The position numbers and the translations under genes are program-made. From NCBI RefSeq assembly GCF_000007005.1, contig NC_002754.1: a DNA stretch of 64,000 nt; one strand, 5' to 3'. Source of the DNA: Saccharolobus solfataricus P2. Its GTDB lineage: Archaea > Thermoproteota > Thermoprotei_A > Sulfolobales > Sulfolobaceae. The notes under the pieces are model-generated. The model was given only the letters and a program-made list of their open reading frames with translations, searched no databases and was not told where the DNA came from. Each line of letters opens with the position of its first letter. Position 1 is the first letter of the stretch. Shown here one piece after another: positions 19,519 through 48,370 of the stretch.

Positions 19519-19866
19519 GTGACAACAAGAGGAAAAGAACAGCAGAAAAAAAAGAAAAGATATACTGAAAGTATTGCTGCATTTAAAAAAGAATTAAAAG
19601 CACTAAGCTTTGAACCAATTTATGGGGAGTCCATAAAGGATATAATAGCGAGATTAACGGTGAAAATAGAAGATATTGCAAACCAGTACAAGTATACAGT
19701 GGAATTTCCTGAGAAAGCTGAAATTGAGGCTGAAGGAGACATTTACTATTTCATATATCCTATAACTCTGAAGACAAAGACTGGAAGAAAAAAAATCTAT
19801 CTTCATGTCCAATACCTTATGTATGATCAGAACCAATGGGCCGGAATGATAACTGGAGTTAAATAA
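19519..19866 (+). CDS. Hypothetical protein, 115 aa, basic N-terminus
   Basis: ORF fills the gap and converges on the sedolisin stop. Confidence 0.65.
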   Translation: MTTRGKEQQKKKKRYTESIAAFKKELKALSFEPIYGESIKDIIARLTVKIEDIANQYKYTVEFPEKAEIEAEGDIYYFIYPITLKTKTGRKKIYLHVQYLMYDQNQWAGMITGVK

Positions 19867-22800
19867 ACTTCTTTCTTCTCTTTATCAAGATCAATGCAAT
19901 AATAGTTATAATATCTAGTACGATTCCTATAGTCAAAATTGAACCACTGTCTAAACTCGGGTAACTAGACTTAGCATGATTATTACCAATCGTTGTGATG
20001 TAGTTTACATTATTGCCTACAGTACTATTTATTTTTATTATTTCTGAATTGACTAGACTTACATTTTGCACCTTAGAATTGATTAAGGTAACTGTACCGT
20101 TTTCAACAATCAAGTTACGTATTATACTATTAATAAAAGTAGCATTATGCCCAACTACTATAGCTTTATCTATGAACTCATTAAAGGCTATAGTGCCATT
20201 GAATACGCTCACATATACATAAGGTAAGACAACAAATTGACTAGAAGGTGATATAGGATTTATGGATAAAGTATTAACGTCAAGAGTGGCAGGGAAATTC
20301 GTAGGAATTCCATCCGCAGATATACCCTCCACATAAACATCCCAATAGCCAGATATACCATAGGTAGAATAGCCTAAGGAATTAGTAGAAGATCCGCTTG
20401 GAATTTCCAATTGACCAATCCAACTTCCGTTGATGTACGTTAAGGGAACACTGTATTGCAACTGTAAGTTATCGAACTGGCTGGAGAGATAGGAGGGAAC
20501 AATAATAGCGGAAAATGAACCGTATTTAACCTCAGTGCCATTAGGATAAGTAATATTTGCTATAACGTATATTTGTTGATTTTGATACACAATACTATTA
20601 TTAGGTATTATTCTAACCTTAACGTTAAGTGAGTATGGAGACACGTAAATTTGAGTTAAACCTACGCCCTCTGCAGTAAAGTTAGAAGCGTTGTAAATTG
20701 CCTTAGTAACAACATAGTAGTATCCTGGCTTCAATTTTGGCAAGGTAATTTGAGTTATATATAATAAAGTATTCTGATAAGTAATTGCATTAACGGGTAT
20801 AGAGTAAACCTTATTTCCCGAGATATTATAGAAAGTTACAGTAACGTTAGGAGATCCTATTGCTAAGGCTTCAGCGAGTATTGTAACGTTTTGACCAGGG
20901 GATAGTACCACTGGGTTTGTAAAGACTGGAGGATAGACCGCATCAAGAATATATATGCCACTAACGAATTCGTCAAAGCCAAACACGTTCGGTATTTTAA
21001 TAAAATAGACTCCACTTATGATATTGCTTGGCAACTGATAGACCCCGGTGAGGTAGCTAGATTCAATTTGGATACCTAAAATGGAAAGGTTTATTAATGA
21101 GGTTCTTTGCAATTGAACGCTAGAAATAATTGACATTTTATTATTCATCTGATCATATTTATATATCAAAGCTGTAAGATTTGAAGGATTCCTCACTAGA
21201 GAACCATTGGGATAAATAAGTTGAACAACTATAGGAACGGGTTCAGGCTCTGGGAATAATGCAATAGGCGGAAAAATGAATTGAGCTTGATAACCAATAG
21301 TAACGTAAGTAGAACCTTCTAAATTACCCGCTTTTACTATTACTTCCTCTATACCGCTTCCTTCTGCAACAAATTCACCAACCCAATAAGTTCCATTAAA
21401 CGACAATGAGAACTGCTGAACAACAGAGCTACCATTATACACGATTCCAATTACACTTGAAGGTCTTATTCCGGTAATATTAGCGACTACTTTTACGACT
21501 TGCCCATCTAAATATGTAATATTATTAACCCCCACAGAAATACTTGAAGAGTGTATTACTTTAGGTAATAGTTGATATAAATATCCGGCATTTATTGATC
21601 CTAAACCAGTTACAGGATTCAATTCTGACGAATTAACGTAATAAGGTGTATTATATCCGAAACCTATGGGAGATAATGCACTTGTGTTTCTTAGCTCATA
21701 AAGAAAAGGATTTACAAATCCTAGCTTACCGTAGCTTTGAGTCATTAGGTCAATAATCCCACTAACTATTGGTGTAGCTAATGATGTGCCGCCCACTAAG
21801 TAAGTTTGATTGTAGTAATACAAGATAAAAGCACCAGTATATGGATTAGCGTCAGCTACAACATCTGGGACCACTCTAAAACCATTACTATCTTGATACC
21901 AAGGAGCGGGAAATAATGTACTATATCCACCGGTAGACGCTCCTAGCACGCTTTCACCGCTCCACGCTGTTTCCATAGTCTTATTCCCACCTATGTAGAC
22001 AGATGAACCGCCTACTGCTAAGACGTAAGGTATAGAAGCTGGAAATATTACGGAACCTTGAGGAGCTAAGAAGTAATTGTATCCATTTCCGCCTGCGTCA
22101 CCAGAAGCAGCAGCGAAACTAATCCCCTCAACCTCACCTAGCCAATATTCATACATTAGCGAATTGACATATGAAAGAGGAATTAGACCTAAATCTACAT
22201 ATAGTTCGGGGATACCAAAACTTTGCGATACTACGTTTACTTCATCTTGTTGAACTATATATGCTATAATTGCAGGAAGAGGGATATTTGGATTGGCTAC
22301 GTATAAAACAATTCCAGCATCAGGAGCTATAACATGAGCATACTCAACATCTAAAGAGATTTCCATTGCCCAACCTGTTGAAATACCATTATTAGGATTG
22401 TAAGCTCCTATGGGGACAATTTTAAAGAATGGAGGATTTGGAATATTATACTGTTTGTCAAATTCTTGTAATTGTTGCTGTATGTAGGGATTACCGTAGA
22501 AATCCAATATGCCTATAGCGGTGCCTTTTCCAGTTATGTTATGGGCGTGTAACCAGCTAATATTATAAGCATAGAGTAATTGACTAGGCTTTAATGCATT
22601 ATATGCGACAGCTTGTGTAACGTTATAGAGTGTTGTGGGCTTATTTAGAATTAGTGAAGTAATATTAGTACCTATTACGATGGCGTTAGGAATTACTGGA
22701 GAACCAAAAAATTCAAAGAACCTCTTTCCGTTGAGTTCATAAACGTAGAACTTCCCATTTAATGCTTTCTCTAGCTGTGAAACAGTTCCACTAGCCAATA

Positions 22801-23092
22801 TTACATTCATATAACTGGTTGCGGATATATTTGATTGCCTTAACTGAGATAACGTTTTTGATATTTCCTCTGTTGGAATGAAAAGCTTTTCCACTTGAGT
22901 CTGATTTAATATTACATGTTCTTGAACATATTGTTGTAAAAGAGTTAGATTACTCGGTGGAAAAACTATAGCCACCGTTAAGTAATAGTTTGGAGATAAT
23001 GTTGTGATTGACTGGTTGTTTATATTCGTAATAGTCAATGGTAATACAATGTCACTTAAAGCTAAAATCAGCAAGAATATACTCCATGTCAT
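19859..23092 (-). CDS. Sedolisin (peptidase S53) family membrane-anchored surface protease
   Basis: Signal peptide and prodomain; catalytic motifs EISLDVE, SGDAG and GGTSLATP; C-terminal TM helix followed by KRRKK. Confidence 0.92.
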   Translation of the reverse strand: MTWSIFLLILALSDIVLPLTITNINNQSITTLSPNYYLTVAIVFPPSNLTLLQQYVQEHVILNQTQVEKLFIPTEEISKTLSQLRQSNISATSYMNVILASGTVSQLEKALNGKFYVYELNGKRFFEFFGSPVIPNAIVIGTNITSLILNKPTTLYNVTQAVAYNALKPSQLLYAYNISWLHAHNITGKGTAIGILDFYGNPYIQQQLQEFDKQYNIPNPPFFKIVPIGAYNPNNGISTGWAMEISLDVEYAHVIAPDAGIVLYVANPNIPLPAIIAYIVQQDEVNVVSQSFGIPELYVDLGLIPLSYVNSLMYEYWLGEVEGISFAAASGDAGGNGYNYFLAPQGSVIFPASIPYVLAVGGSSVYIGGNKTMETAWSGESVLGASTGGYSTLFPAPWYQDSNGFRVVPDVVADANPYTGAFILYYYNQTYLVGGTSLATPIVSGIIDLMTQSYGKLGFVNPFLYELRNTSALSPIGFGYNTPYYVNSSELNPVTGLGSINAGYLYQLLPKVIHSSSISVGVNNITYLDGQVVKVVANITGIRPSSVIGIVYNGSSVVQQFSLSFNGTYWVGEFVAEGSGIEEVIVKAGNLEGSTYVTIGYQAQFIFPPIALFPEPEPVPIVVQLIYPNGSLVRNPSNLTALIYKYDQMNNKMSIISSVQLQRTSLINLSILGIQIESSYLTGVYQLPSNIISGVYFIKIPNVFGFDEFVSGIYILDAVYPPVFTNPVVLSPGQNVTILAEALAIGSPNVTVTFYNISGNKVYSIPVNAITYQNTLLYITQITLPKLKPGYYYVVTKAIYNASNFTAEGVGLTQIYVSPYSLNVKVRIIPNNSIVYQNQQIYVIANITYPNGTEVKYGSFSAIIVPSYLSSQFDNLQLQYSVPLTYINGSWIGQLEIPSGSSTNSLGYSTYGISGYWDVYVEGISADGIPTNFPATLDVNTLSINPISPSSQFVVLPYVYVSVFNGTIAFNEFIDKAIVVGHNATFINSIIRNLIVENGTVTLINSKVQNVSLVNSEIIKINSTVGNNVNYITTIGNNHAKSSYPSLDSGSILTIGIVLDIITIIALILIKRRKKFI

Positions 23093-25384: not shown

Positions 25385-26569
25385 GTGCATGTGATAAGGG
25401 AAACATTGAAAGGTGGTAAGGGTGAAGTTATAAAAAACCCTAAGGTCTTTATCGATCCGTTATCTGTATTTAAGGAGATTCCGTTTAGAGAGGATATATT
25501 AAGGGATGCCGCAATTGCTATTAGGTATTTCGTTAAGAATGAGGTCAAGTTTTCGAACTTATTCCTTGGATTAACCGGTACCGGAAAAACTTTCGTGAGC
25601 AAATATATCTTTAATGAAATTGAGGAGGTGAAGAAAGAGGACGAGGAATATAAGGATGTAAAACAAGCTTATGTTAATTGCAGAGAGGTTGGTGGAACAC
25701 CACAAGCTGTATTATCCTCTTTAGCTGGGAAACTAACTGGTTTTTCAGTACCAAAGCATGGTATTAATTTAGGTGAGTATATTGATAAGATAAAGAATGG
25801 CACAAGGAATATAAGAGCAATTATATATCTTGACGAGGTTGACACGTTAGTGAAGAGAAGAGGGGGAGATATAGTTCTTTATCAGCTGCTTAGATCAGAT
25901 GCAAATATATCTGTTATAATGATTAGTAATGACATTAATGTTCGTGATTATATGGAGCCCAGAGTTTTATCATCTTTAGGGCCTTCGGTAATCTTTAAAC
26001 CTTACGATGCAGAGCAACTGAAATTTATTCTTTCGAAGTATGCTGAATATGGCCTAATAAAAGGTACCTATGATGACGAAATATTGAGCTATATTGCAGC
26101 TATTTCTGCTAAAGAGCACGGTGATGCAAGGAAAGCAGTAAATTTGCTTTTCAGGGCAGCTCAGCTAGCTTCAGGTGGGGGTATTATTAGGAAGGAGCAC
26201 GTAGATAAGGCCATTGTGGATTATGAACAAGAGAGGCTTATAGAGGCCGTCAAAGCTCTTCCTTTTCACTATAAATTGGCTTTAAGAAGTCTGATAGAGT
26301 CAGAAGATGTAATGTCTGCTCATAAAATGTATACAGATCTTTGTAATAAATTCAAGCAAAAACCCTTATCGTATAGGAGGTTTTCAGATATCATATCAGA
26401 ATTGGACATGTTTGGGATAGTCAAGATAAGGATAATTAATAGGGGTAGAGCCGGTGGAGTTAAGAAATATGCATTGGTGGAAGATAAGGAGAAGGTATTA
26501 AGAGCGCTTAATGAGACTTTTGAAGATAGTATTAGTATTGGTGATTTTGATGATGTGGGAGAAAATTAA
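25385..26569 (+). CDS. cdc6-3: Orc1/Cdc6 replication initiator (Cdc6-3/Orc1-3)
   Basis: Walker A GLTGTGKT, Walker B YLDEVD, HGDARKA, and a C-terminal wHTH ([10 protein letters not shown]...GRAGG). Adjacent to the origin. Confidence 0.92.
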
Positions 26570-32280: not shown

Positions 32281-32629
32281 TCACCTTCTTTCTTACCATT
32301 AGTTTCATTCCCTCTCTTTTCACTACTACTATATCTTCGTTTTTCTTTATATCCTCTAGAGCTAAGGCTCGCCAATATTCACCCTCTACTATTACATAGC
32401 CTTCTTGTCCAGACTTTATATCATCAACTGCTTTTCCAATTTTTCCCTCATAGGAGTATAAGTTTCTTCCTCTTGTTTTTATAACAACATTAATAACCCG
32501 ATATGTCAGGAAACCTAGTAGGGCCAGTGTTGGAATATCTATTATAGGGTCAGATATGTAACCAGTAATGACTAAAATTGCGATTAAAATTGCGATAATT
32601 ATCAAGGTGATTGCTACTGGGTGTGCCAC
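32255..32629 (-). CDS. Short NfeD-family protein (TM helices plus C-terminal OB fold)
   Basis: EGKIGKAV...GYVIVEGEYWRA...IVVVKREGMKLMV. Confidence 0.88.
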   Translation of the reverse strand: MAHPVAITLIIIAILIAILVITGYISDPIIDIPTLALLGFLTYRVINVVIKTRGRNLYSYEGKIGKAVDDIKSGQEGYVIVEGEYWRALALEDIKKNEDIVVVKREGMKLMVRKKVSDIETSRV

Positions 32630-32661
32630 AGATTTTTTATTAGCTTGATTGGTATATATTT

Positions 32662-33993
32662 GTGATGTATAAGGTTCTGCTCATAATAATTCTATTATTG
32701 CCATTATCAATGCCCTTGAGTATACCCACTACTTCACAACCTTCAGCTTTAGCTTTTCCCTCAGGAGTGACTAGTTATCCTTTGAATACAATAATCTATA
32801 CAGATTTCGTTATGGGTAGGATCAATATTTCATATTTAAATATAGGTAGCTCGTACTTACCAGGAGGAGAATATTTCACTACTGGAAACGCATCGCTTCA
32901 GTTAAACGCTATGGTATTAGGAGAGTATTGGGCACAAAATGTGATTCTATTTCATCAAATATCAAATAATACCTTTTATGCTACACTGATAGTAAATCTT
33001 TGGAATCTTTCTGGCCCCTTTAGTAATACAACAAGTAATTCGTTAGTATATCAAGGTCTAGGTGTAATTTGCTATCAAGGTCCAACGTTCAAGGTAACCT
33101 TACCCCTTTCCATTAGCCTATTTATGGAAATAGTTAATTCTACATTAAACTTTGGATATAATATAAATGGGCAGAAGGGAATCTATTTCAGATACCCTAT
33201 AATAGGTTTATTCCAGTTAGGTGGTCTTTCACTATTAGGGTTGCCAAATGATCTAGAGTTAGTTTGGGGAGGACCAGGTGGTGGAAGTGTGGTATTTATG
33301 AATGTGAGTAGTATAGCCAATTTGTACTATTTCAATGGGAATACTTTAACTATTGTACCCAACGCTTACTCTATAGGATTTGATACTGCAGAATCGGCTT
33401 ACGGGGTAAAGGTATACTCCACTTTTCCTAGTGTATTTTCACCTATAGTGATTGAGACAAGTGGGGTTAACGTACCTTCAGTATTATGGCCAATTCCTCC
33501 CCACGTTTTAGTTAATCAGACTAGTAATAAAATAACTGTGAAGTTGTCCATAAGTAATAAGTCCTTATCAGGGCAAGCGGTCTATTTGGAAACCGGATTT
33601 CCTCCTTCGGTCATATCTTCTGCAGTGACAAATTCCTCTGGAATTGCGGTATTTCCTAATAACAATTATTCGTTTTATGTAGTTTATTTTCCAGGCAATT
33701 TCACTCTATCTTCGACCTACTACTTCTCCTCACCAATCCTTAATTCACTTTCTAGTAAGTTTCGATCTTATTACCAAGATTTATTGAATTTTCTAAACTC
33801 GGCCCAGAATTCCTTTAAGAAAGGTATAAAGTCTGTACTATCTAAGCAAGAAACTTCCATAACTACTACCACGTTAACTTCTACTACTTCAAGTTCTTCC
33901 CAATTTGGGGTTAACTTGTATATCGTACTTTATATCTTAGCTTTTGTAATAGGTATGGTAATTTCAGCAATATTAATAAGGTTCAAATTATAG
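32662..33993 (+). CDS. Thermopsin-family acid protease, membrane-anchored
   Basis: Signal peptide; motifs ASLQLNA, YWAQNV and DLELVWGGPGGG; Thr/Ser linker and C-terminal TM helix. Confidence 0.9.
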   Translation: MMYKVLLIIILLLPLSMPLSIPTTSQPSALAFPSGVTSYPLNTIIYTDFVMGRINISYLNIGSSYLPGGEYFTTGNASLQLNAMVLGEYWAQNVILFHQISNNTFYATLIVNLWNLSGPFSNTTSNSLVYQGLGVICYQGPTFKVTLPLSISLFMEIVNSTLNFGYNINGQKGIYFRYPIIGLFQLGGLSLLGLPNDLELVWGGPGGGSVVFMNVSSIANLYYFNGNTLTIVPNAYSIGFDTAESAYGVKVYSTFPSVFSPIVIETSGVNVPSVLWPIPPHVLVNQTSNKITVKLSISNKSLSGQAVYLETGFPPSVISSAVTNSSGIAVFPNNNYSFYVVYFPGNFTLSSTYYFSSPILNSLSSKFRSYYQDLLNFLNSAQNSFKKGIKSVLSKQETSITTTTLTSTTSSSSQFGVNLYIVLYILAFVIGMVISAILIRFKL

Positions 33994-34017
33994 TTATATA
34001 TTTGGAGGTAGTAAGAT

Positions 34018-34821
34018 TTGGCTATAAGCATAGGAGATATAGTAGGTATAGTATTTCTTATCATTATAATAATCATCTTTATCGCCATGTCATTTAGGGT
34101 AGTTAGAGAATGGGAGAGAGCCGTTGTATTAAGATTGGGGAGATTTTTGAGAGTTAAAGGCCCTGGAATCATATTCCTTATACCCTTTGTTGATAGGCCA
34201 TTAGTAGTGGATCTAAGAGTGAATACTGTTGAGGTTCCACCTCAAACTATCTTAACTAAAGATAACGTTACTGTAAGTGTAGACGCGGTTGTATACTATA
34301 AGGTTGTTGATCCACAGAAAGCAGTATTAAGTGTTTTCAATTATAATGTGGCAGTACTAAATTTAGCTCAGACCTCATTAAGGGATATTGTTGGACAAAT
34401 GGAATTGGATGAGTTACTAAGTAAAAGGGAAGAAATCAATAAGAGGATACAAGAAATATTAGACGTCACAACTGAAGGATGGGGAATCAAAGTTACTGCT
34501 GTAACTATAAGAGATATTAGATTATCTCAAGATCTGTTATCTGCTATGGCAAAGCAAGCTGAGGCAGAGAGATTGAGAAGAGCAAAGGTAATACTAAGTG
34601 AAGGTGAAAGGCAAGCTGCAAGTATTTTAGCTGATGCATCAGCTTACTACAAGAATAATCCATCAGCATTACAGTTGAGATTTTTAGAAACATTATCAGA
34701 CATCTCACAAAGAGGAGGTTTAATAATAGTAGTTCCTGCAGGGAATGAAATATACCCTACTCTAGGTACAAGCGCCGCATTATCAACTCTCTCAAAAAAG
34801 TTTCAAACTGAAACCAAGTAA
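34018..34821 (+). CDS. SPFH/band 7 (stomatin-like) protein
   Basis: Motifs VVREWERAVVLRLG, LTKDNVTVSVD and QAEAERLRRA. Confidence 0.95.
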   Translation: MAISIGDIVGIVFLIIIIIIFIAMSFRVVREWERAVVLRLGRFLRVKGPGIIFLIPFVDRPLVVDLRVNTVEVPPQTILTKDNVTVSVDAVVYYKVVDPQKAVLSVFNYNVAVLNLAQTSLRDIVGQMELDELLSKREEINKRIQEILDVTTEGWGIKVTAVTIRDIRLSQDLLSAMAKQAEAERLRRAKVILSEGERQAASILADASAYYKNNPSALQLRFLETLSDISQRGGLIIVVPAGNEIYPTLGTSAALSTLSKKFQTETK

Positions 34822-34869
34822 TCAGCTGGACTAGGAGTATTCATCCATCATTTACGTCTTCCTCATCAT
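34822..34869 (-). ncRNA. Box C/D methylation-guide sRNA candidate
   Basis: ATGATGA-ggaagacgtaa-ATGA-t-GGATGA-atactcctagtccag-CTGA, overlapping the stop of the NurA-like gene. Confidence 0.7.
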
Positions 34870-35943
34870 TAGCTCTGCTAGCTTATCGTTTATATCTAAA
34901 TAGTTTTCTCTAGCTAAGTTAAATAATAATGCGTATTTCTTTGCATCTTGTGAATTTATCTCCGAAAGTTCATCAGCTAGTTTGTTCAATAACGTAACTT
35001 CTCTAATACTTTGCATAGCCCAAATATTCAAATATTTAATTGGTGTGAAGTCAGGTTCCCTTTCAGCCAGCACATCTATTCTAACTATTGGTGACGTTGT
35101 ATTATATTGGTAATACAGAGAGTATATTGAGAGTGAGTCATTAAACACCTTTTTATATCGATTATAAGCCTTCGAGATTCCCTTAAGATCATCCAATATT
35201 ATCTGATTATTTATTAACGAATCCCAACTTATCCACCCTAGATATACTGGTTTATTAAACTCAGATTTTTCGAGCCTATATTTATACATAATACTAAATA
35301 TAATATAGTTCTCTCTTGCCTTCATCAGTGCGGGATAATTATTTAAAAACTCCTTGATCAATATTCTATGAGAGAAGTTCTTTACTATTCCCACGATTAA
35401 TTTATTCTTACCCTTTAATCTTCTAAGTACTGTAGAACGATATAGTGCTAACTTATCCAGAGATAAGATATTTTCTATCTCAACATCCTCTTCATAATAT
35501 GTTGGTGGATCCACAATAGGTCCATCGATAAATATCACGTCACACTCCTCACACTTCTCTATTAGACTCGTTTCTAAAGTAAGCATAAATAAAATGGATT
35601 TGTTGGATATCACGTTCTTATCGTAGTAATTCTCTATTATCTTGAAATCCTCAGCTATCTCAGATGGGACACTCTTTTTGTCCTTCTTTTTGCCTAAAAT
35701 CTTCACAGCTCTAGCTAGGATAAGGGTTACATCACTTAACTCTATTTCATATTTGCTTCCGTCTACTGCACATGCAATGTGCTCAGAATCTATAATCTCA
35801 TCAAGTATTCCTATTTTTAAATCAATGCTATTTGATATTATATCGTCAAAAATTAAGTTAACTGCCATATTTATCTTTCCTCTCTCATTAACATCTTTGC
35901 TAGCTAACTCATTTACCTTTTTAATAATCTCATTTGTATTCAA
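34852..35943 (-). CDS. NurA-family nuclease (divergent paralog)
   Basis: Acidic motifs CAVDGS and IFIDGP plus VGIVK; in an operon with a HerA-family gene. Confidence 0.82.
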   Translation of the reverse strand: MNTNEIIKKVNELASKDVNERGKINMAVNLIFDDIISNSIDLKIGILDEIIDSEHIACAVDGSKYEIELSDVTLILARAVKILGKKKDKKSVPSEIAEDFKIIENYYDKNVISNKSILFMLTLETSLIEKCEECDVIFIDGPIVDPPTYYEEDVEIENILSLDKLALYRSTVLRRLKGKNKLIVGIVKNFSHRILIKEFLNNYPALMKARENYIIFSIMYKYRLEKSEFNKPVYLGWISWDSLINNQIILDDLKGISKAYNRYKKVFNDSLSIYSLYYQYNTTSPIVRIDVLAEREPDFTPIKYLNIWAMQSIREVTLLNKLADELSEINSQDAKKYALLFNLARENYLDINDKLAELMMRKT

Positions 35944-36628
35944 ACTTTCACCTTTATAGAAATATTTTTCTCAACAAGCATTTTTATAACCTTTATAGAC
36001 TCTTCTAGGTTGTCTCTACTAATCTTGATTTCACCTTTGTCTATTAGTAATATCAATATGCTAATTTCTTTCTCATTTAGATTTATTTTTCTCAATTCAT
36101 CCACGATAATCCCATACAACTCATTAAGGTGTTGTTTAGCTTGTATTTCAACTTCATTTAGCTTAGAGAGTGATCTTTCCTTGGGTATACTAAAAGTTTT
36201 TGCGTCTTTCTGAATTTTAAGGAAGTGATACAGTATTTTAGCATATAATATTAGTCTATTATTTATTTCCTCAATGCTCTTGATTTTCTCTTCTATTATC
36301 TTATTTAGGTCTTGTTCTATATCTTTCTCCAGGCTATCTACTTTACTTTTTATTTTATCTATATATCTGATTATCTCTTCAGCCGAGTTGAGCTTGGTTA
36401 GTTTCTCTATATCCGTTTAACTTCCTCCAGCTTGTCTTCATATTTATTTAATTCGTTTATCTTTTTCTCTAAGGTCCTTAATTTCTTTAGAGACTCCTTT
36501 AGACTTTGTTTAGATTTTTCTAATTCCTCTATTGTCTCGGTAATTTTTCTATCCTCTTCTCTTAGTCTTTCTACATCCAGATTCTGTTTATATTGGGTTA
36601 GTCTTTCCATAAATTCAGCTAAATCCAT
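35940..36628 (-). pseudogene. Coiled-coil protein of about 229 aa split by a 1-nt frameshift near 36415-36418
   Basis: The 73-aa ORF ends AAA CGG ATA TAG. The -1 frame is open from ACG GAT ATA GAG to TGA at 35940, overlapping the NurA-like TTG. The total span of 689 nt is one base short of an intact ORF. Confidence 0.8.
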
Positions 36629-39600
36629 ACTCTTCTAGAACCTCCTTTATTTCTTGAATTAATTGTGTTATTTTTTGTGTATTTCTCTCAACGTTTTCTC
36701 TCAACTTAGGTAATTCTGGACTTATCTTTTCTAGATCATTTACAATCATCTCAATATTATTTAATTGGATACCGACTTTACCTAATGATGCGATTTCCTC
36801 AATTATCGTATCTTTTAACTCATCTCCAGATATTGATACGCCATTTAGTATCTCTTTCAGCAATTTGAATAATATGAAATAAAGGTTTGAGTTATCTTCA
36901 ACGTGTATAGTAGCAAGTAAGTAATCGAGATATCGTTTAAACGACTCTGTTTGTCCCCTCTCATTTATCTCTTGAATTTTCCTCACTAACTTGTCCATTT
37001 GCATTTTGAAGTTGTCTTTAAGTTCATGAATTATCTCATATACCTTCTCTATTTCCTCAATTTTCTCGTTTATCTTTACATGCCTCTTGGCTTTCTCTAC
37101 AACCTCCAATTTTTTGTAGATTTCCTCAACGATCTTGTCTGTCTCAATCACTGATTCTTCGGTCTTTCTTAATAATTCCAAATATATATTCGATAAATAT
37201 AGATAATCATAACATAGCCTTATGTCTTTATTTTCAGTGCAAGATTTCTCATAAGCTTCTATGACCTCTCTCATTTCCTCAAGGCTTCTTATTGCAGCTC
37301 CCCTCTTTTTAGCTGTTATGAAGTACCCATAGGTCGAGTATGGATTATCTAGTTTTTCCTTTATTTTTCTTATTTGCTCGTCTATTTTCAGATAAATTAC
37401 ATCTTTATTTAAATATTTAGCAATTTCGCCACTAACTATTGACGAGTAAACTAAGAAGTCTAAGGTGGGATTTTGTCCAATTTTTTTATCGGGGCTAAAA
37501 ATTTGATACGCAAAGACTAAGGGATTATTTTTATTATCTTTTCTTTTGTTATCTTGTGGACTTACATAATACATTATATAATTAAATACAACCTCCTCTG
37601 CTTCTTGCTTGTATTTTTGCCTAATAAGACCCGCAAACAGCTTAGCGAATGAGGATAACGATTCTCCCGCTAGGTCTTCGAAATCTATGTAATTGGATCT
37701 AATCTTTATTATACGATTACCATAGAAGTAAGTAATAATGTCATCAACAAACGTGTTGGATGTTTCTATATCTTCTAAATGGAACTGCTTACTTCCATAC
37801 ATTCTAAATTTCTCATTAATTATCTCATTTACTTTCTCGAATAACTCATTAGCATTTACCATTTTTATTGATGGGTAAAATATTATCCAATTGAATGATT
37901 GTATTAATCTCTTATTTCTAGGTATGGGAAGTTGGTTCAAGTTAAGATTATCTCTTATTTTTAGCAGTAGGGAGGATATCGAATTTTTCAGATCTCCTAG
38001 TCTTAGTTCTATGGAATCAAGCCTAATTCTACTTTGTCCGTAGATTTTAGAGAATAGTAGATATAGCAACTGTCTTTTCTTTGGTGTGGTCATTTTTAGT
38101 TCGATCAACGGTATTGATAGTCCGTCTAGAGTTTTGGATAGTTCTTCCTTCCTTATTTGAGGCTCTATTAGAATAAGACCGTGAATTAGCTCGTCACTTT
38201 CGTTGATCTCTTTTATTAAGTTCTTAATTTCATCCTCGTTAGCTGGATTTGCCAAAATAATAGTAATTTTCTTATTATCCATTATAAGTTTTAAAAACCT
38301 TATGTAGTCTTTGCTTCTATTTACACTATCTACCTTTATTCCTAGTACTTCCATTAAATATTCTAATGATTCAAGTTCCTTCTCTCTATCTGTAATATAC
38401 GTATTCACGAACTGTAAGGCTTTATCTCTAATTTCTCTTGACTTAAACTCTACTATTAATCCTCCTATATTAGTATTCGCTATGCTCTCAAAAAAGCTCC
38501 AGGATATTGCATATGCATCAGTTTTACCGAATAGTGATAGTTTTTTTACATTCTCCTTTATTTTACTTATATCTATGCTTTCATGGAGTATAGTTTCTAT
38601 ATTGTCGGATATAAATACATGAAAATCGTCTTGATAATATGTTAAAAGAAAGTCCTCAACGTATTCTTGACCTTTAGGGAACATCTCAATCCATTTTAGA
38701 TATGGTATCAGTACCCCTTTTATTACATGACCTTCTAATTTCTTTATGACTAGTTTTTCGTCAGTAAATATTCTGCTCATTAAGACTTTGTATAATTTAC
38801 TTAACTCTTGGGAGTCCATTTCGTTCTCTAATTTTGTTAACATATCTAGTCTAACGGTCTCTCCTTCTGAGTTTAGATTAATTCCCTTATCCGATCTAGC
38901 CAGTTCGTTGAAAATTCTATCTACGTTAGGAAGATTATCGCATACTATATCGTTGAAGAACTTTACGTATTTTCTTCTTTCTTGATCTATTACCCAGTAA
39001 GGCAAATCCATGTACTGTAGTATCTTTAAGTCATTTATGTTAGCCATATTTAGCATACACTTTAACATTAATAGAAACTCTAATTTAGATGGATTTTCTA
39101 TACTAACTTTTCTTATTCTTTCTAGAAGTGAAGGGTAAGTTTCTGAAAATAAGTTATAAATTATGCCTCCAGTTCCAAATATTTTAGAATATGCGCTTGG
39201 GGTCATGGAAAGGTATATTATTGAATTTCCAGTTGAATTAGCTAATTCCTTTACCTTGCTCCAAAAGTCCTTTATCTCGTTTTGATACTCTGCGAAGTAA
39301 TCTACAGAACTTTCCACTTCATCAATAAGGTACACATTATTTTTGAACGTTAACAAATCTTCGGTTCGGCTTAAAAGTTCTACAAAGGGTATCTTTATTA
39401 CATTAATATTTCTATTTTTTGCATATTCCTCAATGATGTCAAGGAACGTACTTTTTCCTTGTCCCCAATCGCCGACAAGCGATATTATTTCTGGGGATTG
39501 TTTAATCTTAGATATCCTGTCTATCTCATCCTTAACTTGCTTGAAAAATCTTAATCTATTTATGTATAATGAGTTCTCTGTAATGCAAGAGAAAATTTGA

Positions 39601-39653
39601 TAGATATAAGAGGAGTCAGATGCTGTTTCGCTTATTCTCTTAGAACAACTCAC
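36615..39653 (-). CDS. Large P-loop NTPase (1012 aa) with C-terminal coiled coil
   Basis: Walker A GDWGQGKST and Walker B VYLIDEVE near the N-terminus; long helical C-terminal region. Confidence 0.8.
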   Translation of the reverse strand: MSCSKRISETASDSSYIYQIFSCITENSLYINRLRFFKQVKDEIDRISKIKQSPEIISLVGDWGQGKSTFLDIIEEYAKNRNINVIKIPFVELLSRTEDLLTFKNNVYLIDEVESSVDYFAEYQNEIKDFWSKVKELANSTGNSIIYLSMTPSAYSKIFGTGGIIYNLFSETYPSLLERIRKVSIENPSKLEFLLMLKCMLNMANINDLKILQYMDLPYWVIDQERRKYVKFFNDIVCDNLPNVDRIFNELARSDKGINLNSEGETVRLDMLTKLENEMDSQELSKLYKVLMSRIFTDEKLVIKKLEGHVIKGVLIPYLKWIEMFPKGQEYVEDFLLTYYQDDFHVFISDNIETILHESIDISKIKENVKKLSLFGKTDAYAISWSFFESIANTNIGGLIVEFKSREIRDKALQFVNTYITDREKELESLEYLMEVLGIKVDSVNRSKDYIRFLKLIMDNKKITIILANPANEDEIKNLIKEINESDELIHGLILIEPQIRKEELSKTLDGLSIPLIELKMTTPKKRQLLYLLFSKIYGQSRIRLDSIELRLGDLKNSISSLLLKIRDNLNLNQLPIPRNKRLIQSFNWIIFYPSIKMVNANELFEKVNEIINEKFRMYGSKQFHLEDIETSNTFVDDIITYFYGNRIIKIRSNYIDFEDLAGESLSSFAKLFAGLIRQKYKQEAEEVVFNYIMYYVSPQDNKRKDNKNNPLVFAYQIFSPDKKIGQNPTLDFLVYSSIVSGEIAKYLNKDVIYLKIDEQIRKIKEKLDNPYSTYGYFITAKKRGAAIRSLEEMREVIEAYEKSCTENKDIRLCYDYLYLSNIYLELLRKTEESVIETDKIVEEIYKKLEVVEKAKRHVKINEKIEEIEKVYEIIHELKDNFKMQMDKLVRKIQEINERGQTESFKRYLDYLLATIHVEDNSNLYFILFKLLKEILNGVSISGDELKDTIIEEIASLGKVGIQLNNIEMIVNDLEKISPELPKLRENVERNTQKITQLIQEIKEVLEEYGFS

Positions 39654-39657
39654 ATTT

Positions 39658-41271
39658 TCACCCTTCGCTTAAAATTAAATCAATTCTTTCCACGTTTCCA
39701 GCGTATGATCCTAACCTAGGATCCCATGGGATTCTTACCAATGCCGGACTTTTCATTATTGACATAAGTCCACTTACTATTACGTATCCAGTATCTAATG
39801 ATGTCAAATTCTTAGTTAATGATTCGGGTAAACCACCTGAAGCGGACATAACATATCTTACGTCTTCATGATATATTCTATGAAAGAAAAAGGTGTTAAT
39901 CATGGATAATACGTATTTATCTATAAATGCTGGTCTTTGACTTACCAGAATTAGAGATGCCCCAAATTTTCTTCCTTGAGTAGCTAGTGTTACCAATACG
40001 TCTTTTGTCAAGTTAGCGTTTACTGGATAATCAATAGAAGGTATGTAGTTCTGTGCCTCTTCTATCACAAATCCCAAAAACCTTTGATTACCGTTGTATT
40101 TGGATCTCGTAAGATAATTAAATATTAATCTAGTTATGTAGCTTACGATGAGTTGTTTCGTAAGGACATCTACTCCTGGTGAACCATCAGCCGAGAAGTC
40201 TATTATTGCTAAACCTCTATTCCTCCAAATCACTTCTAATGTGTTCTCAGTCAAAGATGCAGAAGAGTTGACAAGTTGTAGTCTGCTAATTACTTTGTTT
40301 TTGAATATTTCTAATGCGCTAGCAATTCCCCTAGCAGTACCCGTTGTGATTCCTATATCCTTATTTTGAGCCATCGTAAGAATCTCATTCCTTAGGGTCT
40401 CAATTCCTATTGCACTACCTAAAAGGGTATTATATTCCTTGCTCTCATGGTTTGCTAAAACTTGCTCTAGGAAATTTAGTTGCAGTGTGTTATATGAAGC
40501 CTCACCGTATTTTAGAGACATAATAAATTCTGATAATTCTCTAGGCGTGAATATGGACAAATCTATTGTAAGCTTAATGTCGTTTTGCTCCTTAGGATCC
40601 TTCAATATATACCTCTTTATCCAGCCTCTTCCTTTAGATACTATGTCTAGATTTGTCGAAGCTAAATCTATGTAATCCCCATTCGCATCAATTACAATCA
40701 TCGGTAAGGCCGTGATCTTGTCTCCTATTTTTATGTTAGATAAAAGCTTAATTAAGTATCTCATGTTGTAGCTTTTTCCACTTCCAGTCTCTCCAAAAAC
40801 TCCCATGTGCATTGTTATTGCATTAAGGTCTAACAATAATGGTATTTCAGAACCTGCTAAGGCTCCGTACTCAATTAATCCTTTTTTGTTTTTTATTCCA
40901 TAAAAGGAAAGTAGCTCTTTTTCACTCTTTATTTCTGGTAATCTTCTTACGAAAGAGCCAGGTTTAGGGGTTGTATTATGGTCATATTTTTTTATTAAGT
41001 GCAAAGTTGCTTTTATTATTGTATTCATATCGAGAATTTCATATATCGAAGGTTCTTTTAATATTGACTTAGCTATCTCCCCCTTTTCGTCAAAGAACTC
41101 ATTCAGAAATTCGTAATTTTCAACCCTGACTAGTGAAAGCTTCTCGGAATCATCAACTAATAACAATTGTCCTACGCTTATTTCCTCATCAGCTCTAATT
41201 AGTCCTTGCATTTCATTTGCTTCGCTCTTCTGCAGTACTATTCCTATAATCTCTCCCCTTTCCATCACCAT
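39658..41271 (-). CDS. HerA/FtsK-family ATPase (HerA paralog)
   Basis: N-terminal HAS-barrel-like region; motifs HMGVFGETGSGKS, VIDANGDY, FVIEEAQNY, QGRKFG and SQRP. Confidence 0.92.
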   Translation of the reverse strand: MVMERGEIIGIVLQKSEANEMQGLIRADEEISVGQLLLVDDSEKLSLVRVENYEFLNEFFDEKGEIAKSILKEPSIYEILDMNTIIKATLHLIKKYDHNTTPKPGSFVRRLPEIKSEKELLSFYGIKNKKGLIEYGALAGSEIPLLLDLNAITMHMGVFGETGSGKSYNMRYLIKLLSNIKIGDKITALPMIVIDANGDYIDLASTNLDIVSKGRGWIKRYILKDPKEQNDIKLTIDLSIFTPRELSEFIMSLKYGEASYNTLQLNFLEQVLANHESKEYNTLLGSAIGIETLRNEILTMAQNKDIGITTGTARGIASALEIFKNKVISRLQLVNSSASLTENTLEVIWRNRGLAIIDFSADGSPGVDVLTKQLIVSYITRLIFNYLTRSKYNGNQRFLGFVIEEAQNYIPSIDYPVNANLTKDVLVTLATQGRKFGASLILVSQRPAFIDKYVLSMINTFFFHRIYHEDVRYVMSASGGLPESLTKNLTSLDTGYVIVSGLMSIMKSPALVRIPWDPRLGSYAGNVERIDLILSEG

Positions 41272-41293
41272 TTAACATTACCTAAGAACGTTT

Positions 41294-41884
41294 TTAAACG
41301 ATTAAGCTTCTGGGATTAGATAATGAAAGGTTTCTTATTACATTGGCTATAGTTTTGAAGGCCAATCTACCATATGGGTAAATTGTTATTTTTAAATGTG
41401 AGATTTCAGCTGCACCTTTCACTATTTCATAGTGATGCCTAGGGAGTATACCTATTAATCTCTCGTGTAATTTACTAATTTTTATAAGGGGCTTCGTTAA
41501 TAACTCAACGAACTCTTCTTTTTCCTCTTTGCTCATAAGCGCTGGGGGGTAATCGTAATTGTTAAAAGGATAGCATTCCTCTAACTCTCTAGGCACTAAT
41601 AGCATTGGTTCGGATACTGAATATACTTGTACTTTCTCCTCTAAATTATATTTCTGTAATATGGCGTAGGCTATTTTGTGTGTTGGTGATGACGAGTAAG
41701 GTTTAACTACAGTACAAGGTAACAACAACGCAATCTCCTTATTTGAACTCCAGTTCTCTAGAAAGTAGCGATGCCATCTCATCACCACTGGGTGTCTGAA
41801 CAGATCGTCAGTATTATCTCTTTTCGATATTCTAGTAAAGTCAGGCTTAAGGTATTCATATAGTTGTTCACATGCAGAGCTCAT
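41294..41884 (-). CDS. DUF5591 (ArcS/TgtA2-associated domain) protein
   Basis: Motifs LLLPCTVVKPYSSSPTH and SEPMLLVPRELE..YP...YD. Confidence 0.78.
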   Translation of the reverse strand: MSSACEQLYEYLKPDFTRISKRDNTDDLFRHPVVMRWHRYFLENWSSNKEIALLLPCTVVKPYSSSPTHKIAYAILQKYNLEEKVQVYSVSEPMLLVPRELEECYPFNNYDYPPALMSKEEKEEFVELLTKPLIKISKLHERLIGILPRHHYEIVKGAAEISHLKITIYPYGRLAFKTIANVIRNLSLSNPRSLIV

Positions 41885-42740
41885 TTACCTCCTCCTCTAT
41901 CTCATCTTCCGCGAAAGTATCTAGTTTTTTAGAATATCTTATCAAAGGATTGTTGCTTTCATATTCTGAATTCAAGAGCACCCAAGCGTTGATTAGACTT
42001 CTGTCTATCCAATTGTCGAATCTAATTTGAAATGGGTAGTGAGTTTTATCTAAAAATGATAATAAAATCTCTAGTTCCTCTTCGCTCGCTCTTTTAGTGC
42101 CCCACACTATTTTCCTATTTCCTACGTATCTTTCTCCTTTACCGGGTATAATAACCATACCATGTATGCCCTTAACTCTGTAGGTCGAAGTATCCACGCT
42201 GTCGGCGTTGAAGTAGACTTTTCTCATGAAAGGTGATCCTGCACCTAAGACGTGTATTTTCCCCTTCCATAATTTCCTAACTAAATAATATATTGCAACC
42301 GCAAGTTTTTTGTTACCGCTCTTGTTTAGGGTAGGAGGGACGATCCCACCAAAAGCTACTAGGTCCGTATATTGGGAGTAGAAGTCTATGGATTTCTTTA
42401 TTGACTCAGGATCATAAGCGTGTATGACTGGTACTATTTTCTTATCGAAAACTGTGTATAAGTACTCGAAGTATTTGTAATTCAATTCTGATGGCTTATG
42501 GCAAGGAATTGATGGTATATCAAGGCTCATATATTGTGTGGCATCTAGTATTTTATACTTCTCAACTACTTTTTCTATTTCAACTTTTATTCCTCTAACC
42601 ATTATTTGGTATCCTCCAGAGTCTACCCATGTCTCATTTTCCCAAGATGGTCTATCCCAGTTTAATTGGTTAATCATTAATGGTTGTTTAAACGTCCAAA
42701 CTGGGATTTTCAGATCAGGTATGCCTAGTATTATCTTCAT
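41868..42740 (-). CDS. tRNA-guanine transglycosylase-fold protein (DpdA-like, no Zn site)
   Basis: Motifs DSGGYQ, MSLDIP, PVIH, AFGG, HVLGAG and DSVDTS match TGT catalytic positions. There is no CxCxxC motif. Confidence 0.82.
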   Translation of the reverse strand: MKIILGIPDLKIPVWTFKQPLMINQLNWDRPSWENETWVDSGGYQIMVRGIKVEIEKVVEKYKILDATQYMSLDIPSIPCHKPSELNYKYFEYLYTVFDKKIVPVIHAYDPESIKKSIDFYSQYTDLVAFGGIVPPTLNKSGNKKLAVAIYYLVRKLWKGKIHVLGAGSPFMRKVYFNADSVDTSTYRVKGIHGMVIIPGKGERYVGNRKIVWGTKRASEEELEILLSFLDKTHYPFQIRFDNWIDRSLINAWVLLNSEYESNNPLIRYSKKLDTFAEDEIEEEVNELCM

Positions 42741-42845
42741 TTTTCCTGATATTGGTATTACTATTGGGTTAAATCTTGATTATATAATAATACTACTTGT
42801 TTTCTTACGTTCTCGCTAATGGAAAATGCAATTTCGTATATTACA

Positions 42846-46998: not shown

Positions 46999-47663
46999 AA
47001 ATGAGCTGGATAAGAGATACTAGTTTTCTTATGGAGTGTGTTAAGAATGAGAACATAAAGATTGAAATCAATAGTTCTAATTATTTCATGTCCTTTAATC
47101 TCCTTAACGGAAAATATAATTTGTCGTTATTTTCATCGCATGATATTAGAATATCATATGATGGTAATAGGCTAATCGATATGCATAACTTGAGAGTTTT
47201 GAAGGATAATGAGGCTAGGGTACACATTTCTAATATGATTCGTAATATCAAGGTAAATATGTCAAATGAAATAAACAACCTCGCTATAATGTATAACATT
47301 CCAGTGAAAATTCTATATGAGAATCTAGAAGCTATATTCAATCTTGATTTCTCGCTATTAAGCTGTTTAGATTACGGCCTAGATTATTTTCTACTTCATT
47401 TGACCAATAACTTTGCAAAGCAATCGTCTCAATTTGAGGTAGTAAAGAAGTTGAAATTCATACTAGGAAATGAAAGGGGTTGTATTAAGGCTATTCTAAG
47501 CTTATCTAACACTTATGAATCGGATTCTTTTTTATTTTCGAGTGATTGTATAAATTTTCAGACTGACGTTAATGCATTCTCTAAATTCTTGAGAGATTAT
47601 AGAACACTCAATGTGAAATATATAGAAGTTATAGATTATCTCAAACAAAGATTGCCTCATTAA
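46995..47663 (+). CDS. Hypothetical protein, 222 aa
   Basis: Overlaps the tenA stop; no family recognised. Confidence 0.7.
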
Positions 47664-48370
47664 CTAGAGTAGTTCTTTATGTCATATCTGATAAACTCAA
47701 GACCTAATTTTTGTAATAATTCTCTAGCATGGATAGTTAAATCCGGAGCTACGAGTATTCCTCTTATCTTATCTCCTTTTATTTCTCTCATGTGTAAGTA
47801 GTATCTATACAATTGTGATATTGCGTTTAGTTGAGCTTTGCTTCTCTTTACTTCAATTATTACAAAATTACCTTTTTTATCTAATCCTATTAGATCTATT
47901 TTCCCGTATGGGGTATTATACTCTCTAGTTAATGGGACAAATCCTTCTTCGATCATACTGGGATTTTGGATAATAGTATTTACGATGTCGATCTCTCTTC
48001 CTTTAATCGTGAAATCTCCTTCCTTTACTTCAGCTGAAGTTATGTAAAATACCTCTTTCAAATCTATCTCTATTACCTCTTTTGGTCTATTTCTTTGAGC
48101 CACTATCTTTAATGGATAATCGTTCATTATTTCTATTTTAGTACCTGGTGGTTGCCAGTTTAAGGGTTCCCTTTTAACGCTTTCGTGTATTATCACTGTA
48201 CCATCTGGTTTCAATATTATCAACCTAGGTGATTCTGATGCAACTGATTCGGCTCTTCCCTTATAATTAACCTTACATGTAGCAAAGATTACTATAAGTT
48301 CTCTATAAATTCGGTCGGTTAAGAAGGAATAGATTTCCGTGTTGCTAGGATTTAGTAGTACTGAATACAC
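47660..48370 (-). CDS. nucS: Mismatch-specific endonuclease NucS/EndoMS
   Basis: Motifs [24 protein letters not shown] and GKIDLIG..IIEVK. Confidence 0.93.

Follow-up and report, generated by a model that had tools for sequence, protein, structure and literature searches.

To our knowledge, few innate defences of Sulfolobales are known, and we know of no 7-deazaguanine DNA modification shown in any archaeal cell. In bacteria, Dpd systems (DpdA/B/C with DpdD–K; Thiaville 2016, Gedara 2023) use a tRNA-guanine transglycosylase (TGT) paralogue to insert 7-deazaguanine into DNA, a second enzyme to mature the inserted preQ0 on the DNA, and a linked multi-gene ATPase/helicase/nuclease module to restrict unmodified DNA. 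A six-gene cluster (g1–g6) on the chromosome of Saccharolobus solfataricus P2 (assembly GCF_000007005.1, contig NC_002754.1), within a 64-kb stretch referred to here as the window, brings together a DpdA-like TGT-superfamily protein (g1), a stand-alone ArcS catalytic core (g2), a HerA-family translocase (g3), an AAA+/coiled-coil protein (g4), a small coiled-coil protein (g5) and a NurA-family nuclease (g6). The cluster is a real, conserved, Thermoproteota-wide gene neighbourhood. Tentatively, and with somewhat less than an even chance of being right, it may be read as a chromosomal modification-dependent DNA-surveillance system, restriction-modification-like in logic and with HerA–NurA as its effector. 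This reading draws on sequence and gene neighbourhoods, that is, on the observed gene content, folds, catalytic residues, linkage and viral distribution, from which we infer a DNA substrate, the chemistry, a sensing step and a role in defence.

The resemblance to Dpd lies in a TGT paralogue predicted to insert 7-deazaguanine into DNA, a second enzyme predicted to mature the inserted preQ0 there, a linked multi-gene module of ATPase and nuclease genes, and the retention by g1 of the DpdA catalytic set of three Asp and one His. Unlike Dpd, the cluster has no DpdB (ParB-like), DpdC (DUF328) or DpdD–K as judged by Pfam, PADLOC and NCBIfam; its maturation enzyme would be an ArcS-type amidinotransferase and its effector HerA, NurA and an AAA+/coiled-coil protein, g1 is only 290 aa long and lacks the Zn site, and the locus is core chromosomal where Dpd forms a 20-kb island. 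Pairs of DpdA and ArcS2 have been described in viruses (STSV1/2/4 and Vibrio phage nt-1; Hutinet et al. 2023, PMC10516641), with the same two families in the same order and an overlapping junction. Those pairs stand alone as putative anti-restriction genes, whereas the cellular pair heads a translocase–nuclease operon.

The remaining genes recall archaeal HerA–NurA(–Mre11–Rad50) resection, in whose canonical operon Mre11 and Rad50 lie between HerA and NurA. Both the HerA and NurA families are present here with their motifs intact; however, g3 and g6 are divergent paralogues, no Mre11 or Rad50 domain is found in the cluster, and AAA+/coiled-coil and small coiled-coil proteins sit between HerA and NurA instead. 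A first-pass annotation of this DNA, made from the sequence alone, had already noted the absence of mre11 and rad50, and neither these genes nor a second HerA or NurA occurs in the window.

A further relative is BRC (BREX-related capture), computationally predicted in 45 taxa (NAR 2026, PMC12839542), which combines a HerA/FtsK translocase, a TGT homologue proposed as a 7-deazaguanine self-marker, and a large ORC/Cdc6-type AAA+ protein; the ORC/Cdc6-like AAA+ head of g4 and its faint BrxC/BrxD matches are points in common. The present cluster differs from BRC in having no PglZ, DUF4007, STAND NTPase or GNAT, no DUF6079 match in g4, NurA as its nuclease, and an additional DUF5591 enzyme, and the BRC paper mentions neither NurA, DUF5591, Sulfolobales nor Thermoproteota (PMC12839542). 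HerA-anchored defences (DndFGH, Sir2–HerA, DUF4297–HerA and MADS with mad8) likewise join a HerA ATPase to an effector, some of them beside a DNA-modification module, but they differ from the present cluster, which has NurA as its effector and would modify DNA by exchanging a base, not by phosphorothioation or methylation. The tRNA archaeosine pathway of ArcTGT and ArcS (or QueF-L) shares the same two superfamilies with g1 and g2, and presumably the same sequence of preQ0 insertion followed by nitrile amidation; unlike its enzymes, g1 and g2 are devoid of C1–C2–PUA domains and score far below the equivalog cut-offs. The first-pass annotation knew of no functional description of this gene combination, and none was found in openly searchable full text, subscription-only papers lying outside the search; bacterial Dpd and the predicted BRC come nearest.

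All six genes lie on the minus strand, spanning positions 34852–42740 of the window, and are separated from g1 to g6 by junctions of -17, +22, +4, -14 and -4 nt. Re-reading of the reading frames agreed exactly with the coordinates and junctions assigned in the first pass, and the single operon proposed there is borne out by the conservation of the six genes as a unit. The arrangement is not a product of chance, since other genera repeat this order at the corresponding syntenic position, next to DUF255, SDR and TenA genes: the six-gene order was seen there in Acidianus, Sulfolobus sp. UBA167 and other Sulfolobaceae, locus tags place it in Sulfolobus tengchongensis and Acidianus sulfidivorans, and S. 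shibatae and numerous S. islandicus strains have members of the protein clusters. Within the window, positions 32352–38443 (6,092 nt, comprising the 3′ part of g4, g5, g6 and a stomatin/thermopsin flank) are identical to P2 AE006641.1 at ∼2.016–2.022 Mb.

Conservation of the linkage was assessed from 80 further loci found in a metagenome scan with a g1 profile and 11 loci from a viral scan, partner genes being called by hidden Markov models (HMMs) built from the window proteins; a contig scan with the g4 profile, in which two narrow peptide patterns were used, gave 7 loci only. When the count is limited to non-viral loci in which g1 has 6 kb or more of flank on each side, HerA and/or NurA lies within 8 kb in 12 of 15 loci carrying g1 and g2, compared with 2 of 17 carrying g1 without g2. 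Nine of the linked g1+g2 loci have the AAA+ gene too, one has HerA and NurA, and two have NurA. The chance expectation for such proximity is roughly estimated at ∼4%, because HerA- and NurA-like genes are few per genome, with the reservation that the loci are not independent of one another.

Linkage persists through at least seven gene orders and in both deep branches of the g1 family (Sulfolobales, Conexivisphaera and further lineages), with linked loci on both sides of the root of a maximum-likelihood g1 tree; in the test of conservation across archaea that was proposed earlier as a check, the linkage thus extends well beyond Sulfolobales and survives rearrangement of the gene order. Besides the P2 order (g1–g2–HerA–AAA–cc–NurA, cc being the coiled-coil gene), these comprise g2–g1–HerA–AAA(1460 aa)–NurA in a metagenomic lineage (L016); g2–g1–x–HerA–AAA...NurA in Conexivisphaera (L018); g2–x–g1–NurA in Stygiolobus caldivivus (L017) and its relatives (L042, L044); and, in clade B, g1–g2–NurA–HerA–1482 aa (L093), 1500 aa<-HerA<-NurA diverging from g1->g2 (L056, L116), and HerA...g1–g2<-NurA (L089).

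Viral counterparts of the pair are close. The g1 protein is 70% identical to the 'DpdA' of STSV1/STSV2 and g2 is 60% identical to STSV2_16; homologues of both are adjacent genes in the Sulfolobus viruses STSV1, STSV2 and STSV4, and the TGT-like proteins of SIRV-type rudiviruses, where g1 occurs alone, are 35–40% identical to g1. STSV2_15/16 have been named DpdA and ArcS2, and STSV2 DNA carries 7-carboxy-7-deazaguanine (dCDG) at 0.04% of G, the source of the base and the purpose of the STSV2 pair being left unexplained; in the same study the DpdA2+ArcS pair of Vibrio phage nt-1 produced deoxyarchaeosine (dG+) in plasmid DNA (Hutinet et al. 2023, PMC10516641). The similarities support the view of g1 and g2 as cellular counterparts of the viral DpdA/ArcS2 pair. 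In the maximum-likelihood tree STSV g1 falls within the clade of the Sulfolobales hosts, with Ca. Aramenus as its sister, and S. tengchongensis, the host of STSV, has the cluster. A HerA, NurA or AAA+ gene was found in 0 of 8 distinct viral g1 loci, a collection of 50,697 phage records holds no homologue of g6 (NurA2), g4 was not found in the plasmid and phage collections, and g1 was not found in the plasmid collection. Viruses thus carry modifier genes only, the pattern expected if the mark protects against a host effector.

The g1 gene (41868–42740, minus strand) encodes a 290-aa protein of the TGT superfamily, predicted to be a DpdA-like base-exchange enzyme that swaps guanine for 7-deazaguanine. 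It has no Pfam match, and Pfam and PDB sequence searches from g1 alone were unproductive, a family profile and a structure model being required; against NCBIfam TgtA (TIGR00432) it scores 18.6 bits where the equivalog cut-off is 350. A family profile of 40 relatives matches Pyrococcus horikoshii ArcTGT (1iq8; 3e-6) and DpdA (7ui4; 1.5e-3), and the AlphaFold2 (AF2) model (predicted local distance difference test, pLDDT, 91; predicted template modelling score, pTM, 0.89) has as top Foldseek matches in the PDB ArcTGT 1iq8 (1.7e-9), bacterial TGTs, Cap10 and DpdA 7ui4 (8e-6). The best viral matches of the model are a rudivirus protein (template modelling score 0.87) and many phage DpdA-type proteins, and g1 matches phrog_887 at 4e-48. 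Profile, model and Foldseek together uphold the initial TGT/DpdA-like call, and g1 is, as modelled, a TGT-fold (TIM-barrel) protein.

Three Asp residues, D40, D74 and D183, do not vary among the 40 family members, and their aligned counterparts in P. horikoshii ArcTGT are D95, D130 and D249, so that both catalytic Asp residues (the general acid/base of DSGGxQ and the nucleophile) and the base-binding Asp of TGTs are in place. H107, likewise invariant, aligns with His201 of the 7ui4 chain, probably His181 of Salmonella Montevideo DpdA after a tag offset of ∼20 residues, and with Gln169 of ArcTGT 1iq8; at this position, which faces the Watson–Crick edge, DpdA and g1 have His where tRNA TGTs have Gln. 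The diagnostic value of H107 is uncertain, because a Thermoproteus tenax protein encoded beside QueF-L also has His.

The Foldseek match to Cap10 raises the alternative of protein conjugation as in type IV CBASS, where Cap9/Cap10 act on the CD-NTase: a deazaguanine would be attached to one of the proteins in the complex, HerA, g4 or NurA for instance, and would prime or regulate the effector. The g1 model matches Cap10 (9ntn) at E ∼1e-6, equal to many tRNA TGT matches and better than DpdA, and the tight operon with an effector complex would suit such a scheme. The partner is ArcS-like and not QueC-like, however, the nearest relatives belong to a virus whose DNA is modified, and viruses keep the pair without any effector, all of which makes protein conjugation very improbable.

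The g2 gene (41294–41884, minus strand) encodes a 196-aa stand-alone ArcS catalytic core (DUF5591, 'ArcS2' type, corresponding to the C1 core of archaeosine synthase), predicted to amidate the nitrile of inserted preQ0. Residues 34–167 match Pfam DUF5591 (PF17884) at 2e-19, the protein matches region 261–409 of NCBIfam ArcS at 1e-21 and AF0587 (2q07) at 1e-8, and its bit scores against full ArcS models, 77 against a cut-off of 440 (NF040592) and 61 against 600 (NF053620), are low. The motif PCTVVKPYSSSPTH corresponds to PC-X3-KPY-X2-S-X2-H, the complete catalytic motif of ArcS (PMC10516641), as expected of an ArcS2-type enzyme.

The g3 gene (39658–41271, minus strand) encodes a hexameric DNA translocase of the HerA family, 537 aa long and paralogous to the repair HerA. 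It matches Pfam HerA/DUF87 at 3e-37, aligns over its full length with S. solfataricus HerA 4d2i at 7e-22, and matches PADLOC HerA models and mad8 as well as anti-phage HerA structures; against the NCBIfam HerA_Thermprot equivalog it reaches 99 bits where the cut-off is 800, which does not bear out orthology with repair HerA. The 363-aa product of g6 (34852–35943, minus strand), a NurA-family nuclease paralogous to the repair NurA, matches Pfam NurA at 3e-17, with its D61-G-S, E124 and D140-G-P motifs near-invariant in 11 orthologues. Conservation extends to the Walker motifs and full-length fold of HerA, the catalytic motifs of NurA and Walker A and B of g4, and the effector genes are predicted to be competent.

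Between them, g4 (36615–39653, minus strand) encodes a 1012-aa protein (100% identical to AZF82668.1) consisting of an N-terminal AAA+ ATPase, a middle of ∼500 aa and a helical/coiled-coil tail of ∼220 aa. The invariant motifs Walker A (GDWGQGKS) and Walker B (LIDEVE) lie ∼50 residues apart, and in the AF2 model (pLDDT 85) the N-terminal ∼250 aa adopt an ORC/Cdc6/Hda/DnaA-like AAA+ fold by Foldseek, the middle ∼500 residues being unmatched; the large NTPase of the first-pass annotation is therefore a P-loop protein with an ORC/Cdc6-like AAA+ head. The family is tiny, with 29 matches in 5.8e9 proteins and 16 representatives in 1.84e9, and g4 is a candidate sensor or scaffold. Assignment to Rad50/SMC is excluded by the Walker A–B spacing and the AAA+ fold, and kinship with KAP or BrxC is not demonstrable, the Pfam matches to KAP_NTPase and BrxC_BrxD being faint and P-loop-level. 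An iterated HMM linking the ∼1480–1506-aa proteins of clade B and the g5 genes of two further loci (L007, L008) to g4 was rejected as circular, having been seeded with those proteins. An unseeded g4 HMM and pairwise BLASTP found nothing beyond the P-loop in the ∼1480–1506-aa proteins, for which reason only an analogous architecture of P-loop head and coiled-coil tail is claimed.

In P2 the g5 gene is split between two frames on the minus strand. Piece A (36407–36628) encodes the N-terminal 73 aa of a coiled-coil protein and stops after a one-base indel; piece B (35940–36416) encodes the C-terminal 158 aa in another frame, and its stop overlaps the start of g6 by 4 nt. The span of 689 nt (35940–36628) is not a multiple of three, an intact g5 of 229–231 aa is present in three other S. 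solfataricus assemblies and a Saccharolobus metagenome-assembled genome (MAG; L003, L020, L022, L023), and the P2 gene differs from the intact S. solfataricus gene (229 aa) by a single-base indel. The split could be a real loss-of-function allele of P2 or an error of the 2001 reference sequence. The coiled-coil nature assigned at first pass stands, and the intact reading frame assumed there does not. The two pieces were searched separately, with the intact orthologue of locus L023 standing in wherever the whole protein was needed; they have no significant Pfam matches and only coiled-coil noise in PADLOC, and tblastn with piece B found orthologues in loci L003–L009.

Taken together, these parts suggest a possible order of events. 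The g1 enzyme would replace selected guanines in duplex DNA with a 7-deazaguanine precursor, in all likelihood preQ0, and g2 would then act on that DNA, turning the nitrile of the new base into an amidine-type derivative such as dG+ or an adduct akin to it. The AAA+/coiled-coil protein g4, with g5, would read the status of the DNA and license the effector, whereupon a g3 HerA hexamer would pump unmarked DNA into g6 NurA for degradation. Viruses of the same hosts (STSV1/2/4 with g1 and g2, rudiviruses with g1) would use the marking genes to disguise their own DNA. A rather bolder version, held with slightly more reserve, is that this would be the first cellular archaeal 7-deazaguanine DNA modification–restriction system, acting through a dedicated HerA–NurA effector under the control of an AAA+/coiled-coil sensor particular to the lineage, an effector that bicaudaviruses (STSV) and rudiviruses (SIRV) may escape with captured marking genes.

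A number of observations weigh against such a surveillance system. On the enzymatic side, the 40-sequence alignment of g1 holds no invariant or near-invariant Cys, its sole invariant His residues being H107 and H163, and since there is no conserved Cys cluster the structural Zn2+ site of TGTs and DpdA is evidently missing from g1. The ParB-like DpdB ATPase domain was found in none of the six genes with Pfam and NCBIfam, though bacterial DpdA needs DpdB; HerA or the g4 AAA+ protein could stand in its place. Genes of the preQ0 pathway are absent from the 37 of 58 window open reading frames (at least 120 aa) that were scanned and were not found beside distant clusters, and S. tengchongensis has been stated to lack the queuosine/archaeosine (Q/G+) pathway (PMC10516641). 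PADLOC-DB v2, a check proposed with the first-pass annotation, recognised no catalogued system: there was no system-level match, no match for g1, g2 or g6, only generic HerA and mad8 models on g3, and a marginal mad8 match for g4 (E=0.022).

T. tenax is a further point against it, for there the g1 homologue (325 aa) overlaps a 110-aa QueF-family gene (L115:8001–9255, FN869859.1), and pairs of a TGT-like and a nitrile-amidating enzyme therefore exist with either a DUF5591 or a QueF-like partner. QueF-L makes G+ on preQ0-tRNA in Pyrobaculum calidifontis (PMC5485725), and the overlap lends substance to the alternative that g1 and g2 are a short crenarchaeal arcTGT and ArcS making archaeosine or a relative, HerA, AAA+ and NurA being independent repair paralogues that share their operon. 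The Thermoproteales branch includes the g1 members closest to the catalytic domain of ArcTGT, Ignisphaera has a solo g1 among housekeeping genes, and some g1-family members are labelled tRNA ribosyltransferase, and one g2 homologue 'Archaeosine synthase, short', in JGI/UniProt, all in keeping with a tRNA role. Against it, the linkage to HerA and NurA is kept through all the gene orders described above and in both deep clades, Pfam detects no PUA or C2 RNA-binding domain of canonical ArcS/ArcTGT in g1 or g2, g1 has His at the tRNA-TGT Gln position, and STSV2 DNA contains a 7-deazaguanine although its host is reported to be without 7-deazaguanine tRNA modification (PMC10516641). In Sulfolobus acidocaldarius, tRNA G+15 has been assigned to Saci0659 and Saci0657. 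Since that species has G+15 without g1, a separate full-length Thermoproteota ArcS model exists in NCBIfam (which g2 matches weakly), and the RNA-binding domains are missing, there is evidence against equating the pair with the tRNA archaeosine machinery of Sulfolobales, and a tRNA function for it appears improbable.

Further points against the surveillance reading concern the genomic setting. The pair and the four-gene effector module lie at separate places in Sulfurisphaera javensis; Ca. Aramenus keeps the pair at the syntenic site with the module elsewhere; and a 1.99-Mb genome (CP045483.1, L014) has the effector module alone at the place seen. The P2 locus belongs to the core chromosome, is inherited vertically and keeps its synteny from genus to genus, with housekeeping neighbours, no variable defence island among the flanking genes scanned, and no plasmid location. 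The mismatch endonuclease gene NucS (47660–48370) lies ∼5 kb from g1 and the orc1/cdc6 initiator gene (25385–26569) ∼8 kb from g6, and the cluster therefore belongs to a replication-origin-proximal, core part of the chromosome. No signs of a mobile element were seen at the locus, and an integrated element was dropped as an explanation because the window contains no tRNA gene and the scanned flanks no integrase.

Upstream of g1, a 56-nt intergenic region (42741–42796, minus strand) read directly from the sequence is likely to be the operon promoter, with an A/T-rich TATA-like element, TTATTATATAA, at 42780–42790, ∼40 nt before the g1 ATG; a scan for sigma-70 promoters and terminators gave background level, the sigma-70 model not being applicable to an archaeon. 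For SiL_0019, the g1 orthologue of S. islandicus LAL14/1, one study lists promoter binding by the cell-cycle regulator aCcr1 (SiL_0190) in an electrophoretic mobility shift assay and down-regulation upon expression of the SIRV2 homologue gp21, and records the absence of a homologue from S. acidocaldarius (PMC9976892, Table 1). Targeting by aCcr1 would also fit a role in chromosome maintenance, and the binding together with the down-regulation by gp21 is compatible with a viral counter-measure as well as with a function in the chromosome cycle.

These features bear on the alternative of a genome-maintenance machine, in which the mark and HerA/AAA+/NurA would serve the cell's own chromosome rather than defence, for example in post-replicative marking, in the processing, at marked sites, of DNA breaks or stalled forks, or in base-exchange repair coupled to resection; in one variant HerA and the AAA+ protein would supply ATP-dependent DNA opening for the DpdA-type enzyme, as DpdB does in bacteria. 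The core position near orc1/cdc6 and NucS, the lack of defence-island neighbours, the reported aCcr1 binding, the similarity of g3, over its full length, to repair HerA above all, and the need of bacterial DpdA for an ATPase partner where no ParB-like gene is at hand all speak for it. That viruses carry g1 or g1 and g2 and never HerA or NurA is hard to explain unless the mark helps the virus; the function is evidently dispensable for a sulfolobale, because S. acidocaldarius lacks g1; and g5 is broken in P2 with no obvious consequence. Chromosome maintenance is considered unlikely.

A modification-dependent surveillance system, if real, would add a base-exchange self-mark to archaeal immunity, give HerA–NurA, so far an archaeal repair machine, a second role as a restriction effector, and explain the TGT-like genes of STSV and rudiviruses, including the puzzle of STSV2 DpdA/ArcS2. 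Were the genome-maintenance alternative true, a cell-cycle-linked chromosome mark in archaea would also be new. The system is present in the genetically tractable S. islandicus REY15A and LAL14/1 and in S. solfataricus, with the g5-broken P2 beside intact strains, and tractable hosts and a naturally g5-broken strain next to intact ones make the model directly testable.

Several neighbourhoods hold additional features. Within the window, a 1077-aa open reading frame on the minus strand (19859–23092) has no NCBIfam match at E<=1e-5. In the Saccharolobus MAG (L003:1–592), the 589 nt upstream of HerA contain no g2-like sequence, the rest of the module and its downstream flank being conserved; the contig ends there, and loss of the pair and an assembly break are indistinguishable. 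A Saccharolobus-like metagenome contig (L025:11420–13121) has a 1.7-kb insert between g2 and HerA, including a fragment that, judged by eye from its N-terminal sequence, resembles an IS110-family transposase. Beside the solitary effector module of CP045483.1, which has no g1 or g2 next to it, a second, 649-aa HerA/FtsK-like gene (L014:14051–16000) is convergent to HerA–AAA–cc–NurA, and in Ignisphaera sp. (L012:7049–8830) the solo g1 has ribonucleotide reductase as a neighbour and is divergent from the adjacent gene for a zinc-ribbon radical SAM protein of 593 aa. The gene directly upstream of g1 encodes a HAD-family hydrolase at two distant loci of clade B (L089:8970–9764 and L093:3224–3865). 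A further locus with g1 and no g2 (L040:8468–15121) features a fusion of an AAA_14 ATPase with a MarR-type winged helix, followed by g1, by a HerA gene in the reverse orientation and by a gene for a coiled-coil protein of 543 aa.

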